From assembly GCA_965240325.2 (NCBI GenBank), contig OZ251222.1, positions 124,001 through 188,000 of the forward strand: a stretch of DNA of 64,000 bases, written 5' to 3'. Origin of the DNA: Rebecca billardiae RCC1528 (Eukaryota > Protista > Haptophyta). The notes under the pieces were generated by a model, which made no database searches, had not been told where the DNA came from, and was given only the letters and a program-made list of their open reading frames with translations. Shown here in pieces: positions 13,317 through 47,197 of the stretch (positions are counted from its first letter, which is position 1; every line of letters begins with the position of its first letter). The position numbers and the translations under genes were made by a program.

Positions 13317-14060
13317 TCATCTCCGCTGTTTGCCCAGCGCCGACGAGCCCGGCAGCCCCTCGAGGGCTAACGCATCGAGCACACTGGACAGATTCTGAGC
13401 GCCCTCACTCTCCGTGCGAGAGTACCGCGCCTGCGCGTGCTTGCCCCTCCGGCTGCTCTCGGCCAGGCCATCCACACCACCCAGGCCCTCGGCGTTGTCT
13501 GCAGCGCCGGGGGGTGGCAGCACATGCAGCGATCGCCGCAGCCATGGGCTGAGCCCGTCAGCGTTGCCTGCAGAGAAGCGATGGAGCTCGGGGTCCACGG
13601 CGAACGCGTCCACAAATTGCACCTGCGCCGCCGTCGGGGCCACCGACAGCTCGCTGCGCACGCGCGAGAAGCGCGAGAATTCCTTGCGCGCGGCCGCTGG
13701 TGCCCACCGCTGCACCTTGCGCAAGCACATCACGACGATTCCGGTCGTCGCGAAGCCGTCGAGACAGTGGATGTATGCGGGAAGGCTCTCTTCCAGCATC
13801 ACAATCCTCAGCACATCGTACACCGCCTCGGCACTCAGCCCGACCGGCTGCGAGCGCTCGGTCGGCACGTAGTGGTGCCGAATCTCCTCATGCTCGCAAA
13901 AGTCGCGCAGGTCGGTGCTCGGCTGCTCGGGCAGAAGCGAGACAATCGTGCGCAGACGGAGTCGCCGCAGGAAGCGGAAGTTTACGAGCGTCGGGTACGC
14001 CCCGCGGTGCACGCCCTCCTCCACCGTCGCGAAGCGCAGCGGAGGTGCGACCGCGATCAT
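13317..14060 (-). CDS. Siw14/OCA-family atypical tyrosine phosphatase (OCA6-like)
   Basis: PPLRFATVEEGVHRGAYP...FLRRLRLRTIVSL...YIHCLDG...TGIVVMCLRKVQRW; lacks the CX5R arginine. Confidence 0.85.
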   Translation of the reverse strand: MIAVAPPLRFATVEEGVHRGAYPTLVNFRFLRRLRLRTIVSLLPEQPSTDLRDFCEHEEIRHHYVPTERSQPVGLSAEAVYDVLRIVMLEESLPAYIHCLDGFATTGIVVMCLRKVQRWAPAAARKEFSRFSRVRSELSVAPTAAQVQFVDAFAVDPELHRFSAGNADGLSPWLRRSLHVLPPPGAADNAEGLGGVDGLAESSRRGKHAQARYSRTESEGAQNLSSVLDALALEGLPGSSALGKQRR

Positions 14061-14116
14061 GATGGCGTCGATCTACTCCAATTACGGGATTTTACGCGAC
14101 CAGAATTCAGAATTCC

Positions 14117-15408
14117 TACAGTTTACTATGATTTAACGTGCACACTTGGTTAAGGCGTGATTAACGCCATCCAACACTGCACAAAGACACCGCCACAAAA
14201 CAGACCGGCGCAGGCAGGTGAGGGGCGCGTTGCCGCACCTCATCGAGGCGGCCATTGCAGCAAGCGGCCGCCCCGCGCTCGGAGGCACGCGCTCGAGAGC
14301 GCGTTCTGACACCACACGGGGAGGGTGCTGCACCTGGATGTTGCATCCCAGCCACCTCGAGAGTGCAGCCACGCCAAACACCTGCCTGCGCTGTGAGCGA
14401 CGCCGCGTCGACTGATCGAGCCCCAGCCGAAGGGAAGAACTGGAAGATGAAGGGTGGGCAGGTCCACATGCCCGGCGTAAACTGCGCGCTGCTCGCCCGC
14501 GAAGGCAAGCAGCGCACCCCCGCCGCCTTCGCAAGCAGCGGGGGCGGGGGGAAAGCGGCCCCTCTCGGCTGCCGCCAGCCCCTGTCTGCCCACCTACCCC
14601 GGTTGTGGCACAGAGCCTTCGCCTGCCCCGAACACAAACACCTTGTGAACAGGGCCAGGCGCGGCCCCACGCCCCATCGGGACGAGTGGGCCCGCGAAGA
14701 GCGCGCCCACGACCGCGTCGGTCGTCGCCGACGCCGCGCCCTCATGCCCAGACGCCGCAGCCGGGGCGCCATCACCCAGAGGGTGATGGCAGCCCCCGGC
14801 CTCTTGGCGGTCCGAAGACATGCGGGACGGCCGCGACGACGGGTCCGACGATGCCGAAGGCGCAAGCTCGCGGAAGGGGCCAGAGTTGGGAAGCTGCGGC
14901 GTCGGGCCCGCACGCGCCTTGTCAGCACGATTGACCCGTCGCGTACCCGCAGCCGGCCTCAGCGAGCCGTCCGCGCGGTGCTTCTTCTTCCAACTCTTGG
15001 ACCTCTTCGCAGCACCAGGCACACCAGAGACTGGCGTGGCTGCCCCCCCCTTGCGAGGCGGGACCGGCCCGCGGGCCGGTGCGCTGGGGGCGGGGCCGCG
15101 GCTCCTGTTCGGACGCCCAGCCCCGCCCTGTGGGGTCGCCGCACCGTCCACGTCCCCAGGGGAGTTGCCCGACACGAACACCTTGAAGCGCAGGTCACCG
15201 TTGCCAGTGACCCACACATCCACGGTGAAGCTGCGGGCCGGGTCGATGCAGGCGCACACGTCGCGGACGAGTCGCGCCGTCTCGTCCACCACCGCGCGCA
15301 CCCGCGTCGACCCCTCCCCCGCCGGCCCGCGCATCGCCTGGTCAGCGGCGGGGCGGCCACACTCCATTGCGGAGGTGGTCACGTAGAAAACGGTAGTACA
15401 GTTTACTA
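14117..15408 (-). mobile_element. Insertion bounded by direct TACAGTTTACTA repeats, with a 257-aa ORF (15367-14594)
   Basis: 12-bp direct repeat at 14117-14128 and 15397-15408; 14117-14339 recurs nearly identically at 34395-34617; lies between two divergent host genes. Confidence 0.65.
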
Positions 15409-15551
15409 AGAATAAGAGACGCACACAGCTCAGGCAGGCGAGATTACTAAGAAATAGAGGGGGAAATCGCCGTCGGCCCCGCGTTCGTCGGCAAGACATC
15501 GCGGGACGGGCAGGCCCCCCCCTCCGGGTGGCGGCCGCCCGCTGGCGCGAC

Positions 15552-16732
15552 ATGAGGCTGACCGTGCGCACGCTCACAAACCGATCGATCGACATCGAAG
15601 CCGAGCCCGACTGGACCGTAGGTAGCATCCTACAGCGCGCGTCGGATGTCGAGCACTGCTCGTGGCGCCCTGGGGAGTACCACAAGGTGTGCTGAAGCGC
15701 GTGGCACGTGCCCACGCGCAGGCGACACCGCGCATCACTGTGCCAGGCATGGCCGTCGGTGCCGTGCCGTGAGACCGTGTGGTTCTCGACGGGGTGCTTG
15801 CTCCTGCTTGCCACCTGACGGAACCGACCCGCGCGTCGCTGCCCATTGTGCGCGCGCAGGATGTGGTCCTCGTCCACAGGCGAACATTCCGCCGATTCTG
15901 CGATGTTGAGCAAACGCTGAGTCAGTGCAACATAGGCGACGGCGACGTGCTCGAACTGACGATCCGCTTTGCTGCGCAGCCAGCCGCGACGAAGCTCCTC
16001 GAGCCCGTCGGCTTTTACGAGGTGCTGCCGCGCCCTGCATCGGCAGGCGTGCCCCGCCGCACCGAGATTGCCGTTCACCTCGTGAATGTCACCGTGGAGA
16101 ACCGACGATGCATCGTCCTGAGGCCCGCCGAGGGCGACGTGGAGGAGGCGGCGGTGCCATGCATGCAGATCTGGCAGCCGCCGAACGTGCTCAAGCTCGT
16201 ACCGAGCGTCGCGCTGCGCGCGGACACGCTCTACTCCGTGACGCTCGACCTCAACCTGGACGTGCCGGGCGTGCACGTCAACCACGGCACGTACGACCTC
16301 TCGTGCGTGGCCGACGGCGTGGACACCGTCCGGCCGTATGTCTTCGTGTGGCACTTCCAGACGGGTGCCGTCGAGGGCGACGAGGCGGTCGACCGGCCGG
16401 CCGCCGCCTCGCTGCAGCAGCCCGCTGAGCCCGGGGCGCCCATGCTTGAGGTCGTGCAGGGGCTGCTCTCTCGGCCGCTCGACGGCTTCTCAAAGAAGCA
16501 GCTCGTGATGCTGCAGGCCAACCTGAGCGGCATGCTCGATCGGGTCGGTGACGCAATCACCAACATCGACCAGAAGATCGACACGATCAACCGCAGGCTG
16601 CAGGAGAAATCTCGCCGCCTCAATAATGGCGACCGCCCGGGCGGCGACGACGCGGATCGGCGTCATCACAGCGATGCTGCTGGCAGCGCAGCGATAATCG
16701 AGCACGCGCTCAAAAAGATCAGGCACAGCTGA
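15552..16732 (+). CDS. Ubiquitin-like domain + bacterial-type Ig-like domain + coiled-coil protein; intron 15687-15859
   Basis: Spliced N-terminus MRLTVRTLTNRSIDIEAEPDWTVGSI...TLSQCNIGDGDVLEL (UBL); PRPASAGVPRRTEIAV...LVPSVALRADTLYSVTL...VWHFQTG resembles Big_5/SbsA Ig. Confidence 0.7.
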
Positions 16733-34282: not shown

Positions 34283-34391
34283 GGGGCGTGGGCGTGGGCG
34301 CGACGGGTGCAGGTCGCGAGCTGATCTCGGCCGAGTGGTCGTCTGGCCGACAAAGAAAGTACAGTCCCAACAAACAATGCGTACTGTATGA

Positions 34392-34617
34392 TAGTACAGT
34401 TTACTATGTTTTAACGTGCACACTTGGTTAAGGCGTGATTAACGCCATCCAACACTGCACAAAGACACCGCCACAAAACAGACCGGCGCAGGCAGGTGAG
34501 GGGCGCGTTGCCGCACCTCATCGAGGCGGCCATTGCAGCAAGCGGCCGCCCCGCGCTCGGAGGCACGCGCTCGGGAGCGCGCTCTGACACCACACGGGGA
34601 GGGTGCTGCACCTGGAT
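34392..34617 (-). repeat. Truncated second copy of the 14117-15408 element end
   Basis: 223 bp nearly identical to 14117-14339, including the TAGTACAGTTTACTA boundary. Confidence 0.85.
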
Positions 34618-47091: not shown

Positions 47092-47152
<61 letters not shown>

Positions 47153-47197
47153 TATATATATATCAGTATATATATGCATATATATATATGTATATAT
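47092..47197. repeat. (TA)n microsatellite
   Basis: Directly visible. Confidence 0.95.

Follow-up and report, generated by a model that had tools for sequence, protein, structure and literature searches.

The window, that is the whole 64,000-nucleotide stretch of DNA analysed here, carries on its minus strand the start of a Y_phosphatase2 gene (ATG at 14060) and that of a PhyH-like dioxygenase gene (ATG near 34285). Upstream of each of them lies a copy of the same repeat, hereafter family A. The end of the longer copy at 14117 was found 57 nt beyond the Y_phosphatase2 start codon and that of the shorter copy at 34395 was found 110 nt beyond the PhyH-like start codon, close to the 60-115 bp given in an earlier reading made without database searches (the sequence-only reading). 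The shorter copy is flanked on its other side by the end of a GNAT gene. A plus-strand gene (15553-16732) diverges from the longer copy; its N-terminus looks ubiquitin-like (MRLTVRTL…) and is followed by an apparent intron, and the ORF forming its downstream part (15779-16729) gave no match in a Pfam search. Elsewhere in the window (47093-47192), a (TA)n microsatellite is broken up by CAGTATATATAT units.

The sequence-only reading had noticed a palindromic TAGTA-N5-TACTA motif at this locus and had suggested that it bounds a possible site-specific or recombinase-mobilised element. The letters of the motif were confirmed. The 12-mer TACAGTTTACTA is present at 14117-14128, 15397-15408, and 34395-34406, and the 15-mer TAGTACAGTTTACTA, which is the 12-mer with TAG in front, at 15394-15408 and 34392-34406, a version with 2 mismatches being located at 14114; such matches were absent from every dinucleotide shuffle. 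However, TACAGTTTACTA is not a boundary site: read on the opposite strand, it is the 3' terminus (…TAGTAAACTGTA) common to two repeat families, A and a LINE. At 14117 and 34395 it is the terminus of A itself, while the copy at 15397 belongs to a separate fragment of LINE tail, 15397-15445, which matches at 100% the last 49 nt of the LINE copy found at the loci L075/L076. The TAG at 15394-15396 corresponds to the first three bases of A, and the TAG at 34392-34394 to ordinary flank. The reported second copy of the element is real, 14117-14339 and 34395-34617 forming a direct repeat of 223 nt with 99% identity, and it corresponds to a 5'-truncated copy of A, with 98.7% identity to A positions 1058-1280. 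The coordinates are collected in Table 1.

Table 1. Features of family A and of its partner LINE; positions are those of the window unless a locus is given.
Feature	Position	Strand	Description
Family A, full-length copy	14117..15396	-	1,280 nt; 5' end at 15396; 3' end (…TAGTAAACTGTA) at 14117
Family A, orphan ORF	14594..15367	-	257 aa, stop codon included in the coordinates
Family A, 3' tail module	14117..14186	-	Hairpin (apical stem GGCG/CGCC), GTGTGC box, terminal 12-mer; homologous to the LINE tail
LINE tail fragment, 5'-truncated	15397..15445	-	49 nt; abuts the 5' end of A; supplies the second TACAGTTTACTA
Decayed remnant resembling a further LINE tail end (…TTCTTAGT)	15446..15463	-	Upstream of the 49-nt fragment; weak resemblance, by eye
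Family A, 5'-truncated copy	34395..34617	-	223 nt, the last 223 nt of A
Partner LINE copy	L075:2163-L076:2699 (G000:C12:1140163-1150699)		10.5 kb; one frame of up to 3,371 codons (about 3,350 aa)

Copies were searched for in the assembly to which the window belongs, a GC-rich algal assembly of 72 Mb in 41 contigs, and natural copies were compared throughout. As the sequence-only reading had proposed, the 223-nt end was used as a genome-wide query and the flanks were aligned. This query proved to be a dispersed repeat with 97-100% identity between copies (617 candidates at first look, 40 of them scored). In all 30 fetched loci the homology starts exactly at (T)ACAGTTTACTA, and the DNA outside is unrelated from one locus to the next, whereas on the opposite side the point where the homology breaks off differs in nearly every copy. 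With a longer query, the longest copies extended 1,259-1,331 nt from the fixed end, again with 97-100% identity, and many were shorter. Read on the ORF strand, the copies of family A thus share one 3' end (…CATAGTAAACTGTA), while their 5' ends are ragged, being scattered over positions 1 to 1227 of 1,280. Such a combination is characteristic of reverse transcription that is primed at the target and aborted.

The copy next to the Y_phosphatase2 gene is full length. It was retrieved by BLAST back to the window as 14117-15396, and its 5' end aligned with the 5' end common to four copies of the A2 subfamily (94% identical) that are inserted in unrelated DNA. The mobile element of about 1.3 kb foreseen from the sequence therefore exists, and the absence of terminal inverted repeats and of poly(A) was confirmed when both were looked for. 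No RT or endonuclease of its own was found in family A, and its sole long sense ORF has no Pfam domain.

At least 363 A copies keep the 3' end, as counted genome-wide with a 33-mer of the tail. The exact 12-mer TACAGTTTACTA occurs 1,699 times in the genome, as compared with 6 times for a reversed control. Among the 12-mers that lie outside the lists of A and LINE tails, 20 were checked and all 20 could be assigned to A or LINE tails that are very short or diverged, or consisted of the 12-mer alone, so that no third family using the tail was found in this sample. Insertions consisting of the tail only, either the bare 12-mer or 17-30 nt of an A or LINE tail, are dispersed in intergenic DNA (for example L080, L089, and L097, G000:C1:221333-221744, 972438-972849, and 1549579-1549990). 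Together with the CTGTA-rich flanks described below, they may account for part of the 'stutter' look of the spacers of this genome. At two places an A insertion was found twice with identical flanks, 30 kb apart for L013/L014 (G000:C11:2811631 and 2841413) and 5.3 kb apart for L041 (G000:C17:974251 and 979548). These pairs are segmental or tandem duplications younger than the insertions.

The sequence-only reading had suggested looking for longer relatives that encode a tyrosine recombinase or an RT/endonuclease. The only longer element found to share the terminus of A is a LINE with an APE-type endonuclease and an RT, and no tyrosine recombinase was found. Tails of this LINE were counted 838 times in the genome (39-mer, up to 2 mismatches); as in A, their 3' end is fixed and their upstream extension is variable. 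Upstream of several of them, at a distance of about 5 kb and on the same strand, reverse-transcriptase matches are found. At the locus L077+L075+L076, an element of about 10.5 kb contains a single open frame of 3,371 codons that ends about 360 nt before the terminus, which makes it an unusually large LINE. Pfam domains were detected in this frame for the endonuclease (Exo_endo_phos, 3.6e-7) and for the RT (RVT_1, 4.8e-25), and the nearest solved structures to the RT are those of R2 and of L1 ORF2p. The stretches on either side of the two domains, of about 820 residues N-terminal to the endonuclease and about 1,500 C-terminal to the RT, gave no Pfam match at E up to 1. The 5' end is common to at least six copies at 97-100% identity, and a second subfamily stands at about 80%. 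With both domains in one frame and at least six such similar copies sharing the 5' end, the LINE is young and could plausibly supply the enzyme.

Of 39 short LINE tails, about 15 have their first base at one of two positions, 48-49 nt before the terminus, which fall within the apical loop of the tail hairpin. They form a truncation hot spot, in a sample (L045-L074 and window 15397-15445) that was picked by the 39-mer and from which shorter tails are therefore missing. The idea that the 49-nt unit is a spliced-leader relic was dropped, as longer copies show it to be the end of the LINE. At the other extremity, the 5' ends of A1, A2, and the LINE (window 15396; L037-L040; L075:2160-2175) look alike by eye, with a pyrimidine-rich start TA(Y)NCGT/TACTGT. 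The resemblance is weak and may reflect a shared initiator-like transcription start.

The 3' tails of A and of the LINE (about 65-70 nt) are identical at 45 of 70 positions. The hairpin segment contributes 19 identities out of 23 and the terminal 12 nt are all identical. When these 12 nt were removed, the alignment score of the remaining tail was reached by none of 2,000 shuffles. Both tails contain a GTGTGC box and the terminal 12-mer in addition to a hairpin, whose apical stem GGCG…CGCC encloses a TYAATCW loop, and the A and LINE tail RNAs are both predicted to fold into an extended hairpin followed by a single-stranded tail of about 20 nt, with modest z-scores (-1.1 and -2.8). No clean compensatory change was observed in the hairpin among the four tails compared; the oldest copy (L044) has two changes in the hairpin, which lie in different pairs and thus bring no compensatory support. 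Outside the tail the two elements are unrelated. When the body and ORF of A were compared with the LINE by blastn and tblastn, only the tail matched, the best protein E-value being 0.37.

Stringent-type LINEs recognise a stem-loop and the terminal sequence of their own 3' tail, and SINEs that share this tail are mobilised in trans (PMC1636434, PMC4176376; review PMC3747384). The anatomy of A fits this scheme, indicating that A is very probably mobilised in trans by the LINE. We therefore consider it highly likely that 14117-15396 is a full-length, young, non-autonomous non-LTR retroposon that borrows the machinery of the 10.5-kb LINE via the shared 3' tail. According to this proposal, the LINE protein would recognise the 3' tail on the A RNA in trans and nick AT-richer intergenic DNA, where A would be reverse-transcribed from its 3' end by target-primed reverse transcription. 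Reverse transcription would frequently stop early, which would account for the 3' end being fixed and the 5' ends ragged, and 34395-34617 would be an abortive A copy of 223 nt. The 257-aa ORF would be carried along with A. As for the junction at 15396/15397, the motif at 15397 is the end of a 49-nt abortive LINE copy placed head-to-tail with A. This arrangement may have arisen when one hot spot was hit a second time, or by a template switch.

Similar joints are found elsewhere in the genome. Head-to-tail joints, with a LINE tail before or after the A copy, were observed in 5/81 insertions and tail-to-tail joints in 4/81, and both are far too frequent for chance. The joints arose repeatedly, since their junctions differ from copy to copy. 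They result either from re-use of a hot spot, regenerated by the inserted tail itself, or from template switching. The four tail-to-tail joints (L042, L050, L060, and G000:C1:1330762-1330783) form a perfect palindrome, …GTAAACTGTACAGTTTAC…, with the central TGTACA in common, and could be due to a palindromic nick site or to twin priming.

The ORF of A had been described as encoding an unrecognised, basic, and largely disordered protein, and this description holds. No relatives were found in Pfam, in PHROGs, or in a word search of 5.8 billion clustered proteins, and none at E up to 0.001 in a HMMER profile search of 1.84 billion representative proteins. AlphaFold2, run with a 7-sequence alignment, gave a mean pLDDT of 46, with only residues 21-70 or so above 60. 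The model consists of a small N-terminal helix and beta-hairpin (residues ~19-66, pLDDT 63-77), the rest being disordered, and outside this N-terminal unit the protein is basic. The ORF is intact in 9 of the 11 full-length A copies, and its start codon and frame are retained in three subfamilies, including a copy with 81% identity that has an in-frame deletion of 77 codons. Its length alone means little at such a GC content, since two other long ORFs overlap it in other frames. Its composition is heterogeneous: the GC content at codon positions 1/2/3 is 0.70/0.56/0.90 over the first 70 codons, which is gene-like, as in the neighbouring host genes, and 0.75/0.70/0.76 over the remainder, which is not.

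The dN/dS ratio of the ORF is 1.2-1.8 overall and 2.4-9 over the N-terminal 56 codons, in which the third position is the one that changes least. No purifying selection was found, the ratio being at least 1 also between subfamilies. The high N-terminal values could reflect diversifying selection or, equally, GC-biased fixation on a relaxed segment that was formerly coding, since the GC3 of 0.90 at the N-terminus lets GC-biased fixation explain dN/dS as well as positive selection does. In our reading, the ORF is a lineage-specific passenger frame that may be translated. A more ambitious reading is that A codes for a protein and is a parasite or partner of the LINE. Its orphan product, with a small folded N-terminal unit and a long basic tail, would be translated, placed under diversifying selection, and act either as an RNA-binding cofactor, in an ORF1-like role that has no counterpart in the single-ORF LINE, or as an anti-silencing countermeasure. 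We regard this reading as rather unlikely; if it were true, A and the LINE would form a two-component retrotransposition system split over two unrelated elements.

The same data bear on another origin of A, from a host messenger. The transcript of a real host protein gene that ends in a LINE-like tail would have been retro-copied into a processed-gene family, the copies being dead retro-pseudogenes. The gene-like composition of the first 70 codons and the conservation of start and frame in the three subfamilies would both be expected from such an origin, and a dN/dS near 1 suits dead copies. However, the ratio is also 1 or more for the differences between subfamilies, which represent the source lineages, and the two large protein searches returned no homologue of such a protein. 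Moreover, the tail is a 65-nt module derived from the LINE and not a chance ending of a transcript. No intron-bearing parent gene was seen, in a search of the own genome that cannot see past the many copies. A host messenger as the source of A thus appears improbable.

We also looked at the flanks of the insertions. Among 81 unique insertions, no consensus position was found in the 3' flank from +1 to +12, and the CTA that completes the 'palindrome' after the terminus is present in only 4/81. A consistent target-site duplication was not found either in 80-81 unique insertions: the longest words shared by the two flanks average 4.46 nt as compared with 4.2 nt in shuffled pairings, which is no excess, with a few cases of 7-11 nt. 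Absence of a target-site duplication is unusual for APE-type LINEs, though short or absent ones do occur. The flanks are AT-richer than their surroundings (GC 54% vs 67.5%), and the words CTGTA/TACAG are 4 times more abundant in them than in DNA 400-1,000 nt away. The preference for promoters advanced by the sequence-only reading is thus partly supported, as regards an association with AT-richer, promoter-like spacers near gene starts, but a similar pattern would be expected if selection in a compact genome removed the insertions into genes.

These flanks decide against the recombinase proposed at the outset, i.e. a site-specific or tyrosine-recombinase element that targets the palindromic TAGTA-N5-TACTA and leaves it duplicated or retained at its boundaries. 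Such an element was favoured by the 15-mer, of which the window contains two exact copies and one with 2 mismatches while no shuffle contains any. But in every copy 12 of its 15 nt are part of the repeat, and none of the other flank positions is conserved. The flanks of the other copies are unrelated, so that the site-specific reading fails by the criterion which the sequence-only reading had itself set. In addition, the copies are ragged at one end only, A has no recombinase gene and no split or inverted terminal repeats, and the motif at 15397 terminates a fragment of another family, namely the tail of the LINE. With a fixed 3' end, variable 5' truncation, and a homologous tail on a partner that encodes an APE endonuclease and an RT, we give mobilisation by a tyrosine recombinase almost no credence. 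A DNA-level element, Helitron-like or of another rolling-circle or cut-and-paste type, whose imprecise termination would leave one end fixed and the other variable, is hardly credible, since the ends, TAC…/…CTGTA on the element strand, are not 5'-TC…CTRR-3', there is no consistent A|T insertion site (Helitrons being marked by 5'-TC, 3'-CTRR, a subterminal hairpin, and insertion between A and T), the fixed end is common to the APE+RT LINE over a 65-nt homologous tail, and the extreme copies of 12-30 nt, tail only, suit abortive reverse transcription.

The retroposon that remains is a new family of a known type of element, as the sequence-only reading had allowed when it spoke of a possibly undescribed family: the body of A has no described relatives, and what is known of retroposition is unchanged. 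A false lead is removed, as there is no new recombinase target at this site, and a young and clean pair formed by a LINE and a non-autonomous partner is identified in a GC-rich alga. Several features make this pair useful. Its recognition module is short and sharply defined (the hairpin and the terminal 12-mer), about 1,700 copies of the tail are present, some of them reduced to 12 nt, and the partner lacks a Pol III head and contains an orphan ORF. The pair could help to annotate the repeats of the genome and to account for some of its odd, CTGTA-rich intergenic sequence, and it could be used as a natural test case for the choice of RNA by a stringent LINE.

Among known systems, A resembles the Crypton, DIRS, and Ngaro elements in being devoid of long terminal inverted repeats and of poly(A), but differs from them in lacking a recombinase, split direct repeats, and a conserved target core, and in being ragged on one side only. 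HAL1 (half-L1), a non-autonomous ORF1-only derivative of L1 (PMC5753468), is comparable in that A, too, very probably depends on a LINE and has one protein-coding frame without RT or endonuclease. In contrast to HAL1, the ORF and body of A have no similarity to the partner LINE, which consists of one giant ORF with no separate ORF1; a HAL1-like deletion derivative was thus rejected, the body of A being unrelated to the LINE. The trypanosome pairs Ingi/RIME and L1Tc/NARTc and the short retroposons SIDER/TSIDER (PMC3820030) are another case of protist LINEs with short non-autonomous partners that share terminal sequence and reach hundreds of copies. These partners are built from both ends of the LINE, whereas A shares the 3' tail only.

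The nearest parallel is with the stringent LINE/SINE pairs. A is not a classical SINE, and this assignment was rejected because a Pol III head is missing: no tRNA was found in A, and Rfam gave no match above noise in 14000-15600. Unlike the SINEs of these pairs, A has no head derived from tRNA, 7SL, or 5S, is long for a SINE with its 1.28 kb, contains a 257-aa frame, and shows no clear target-site duplications, and its mobilisation in trans is one that we infer. Nevertheless, like these SINEs, A is without poly(A), has a fixed 3' end and 5' truncations, and has a body unrelated to its LINE. As described for UnaL2/UnaSINE1 of the eel and for the ZfL2 family of zebrafish (PMC1636434, PMC4176376, PMC3747384), A carries the 3' tail of its partner LINE, a stem-loop followed by a short conserved terminus.
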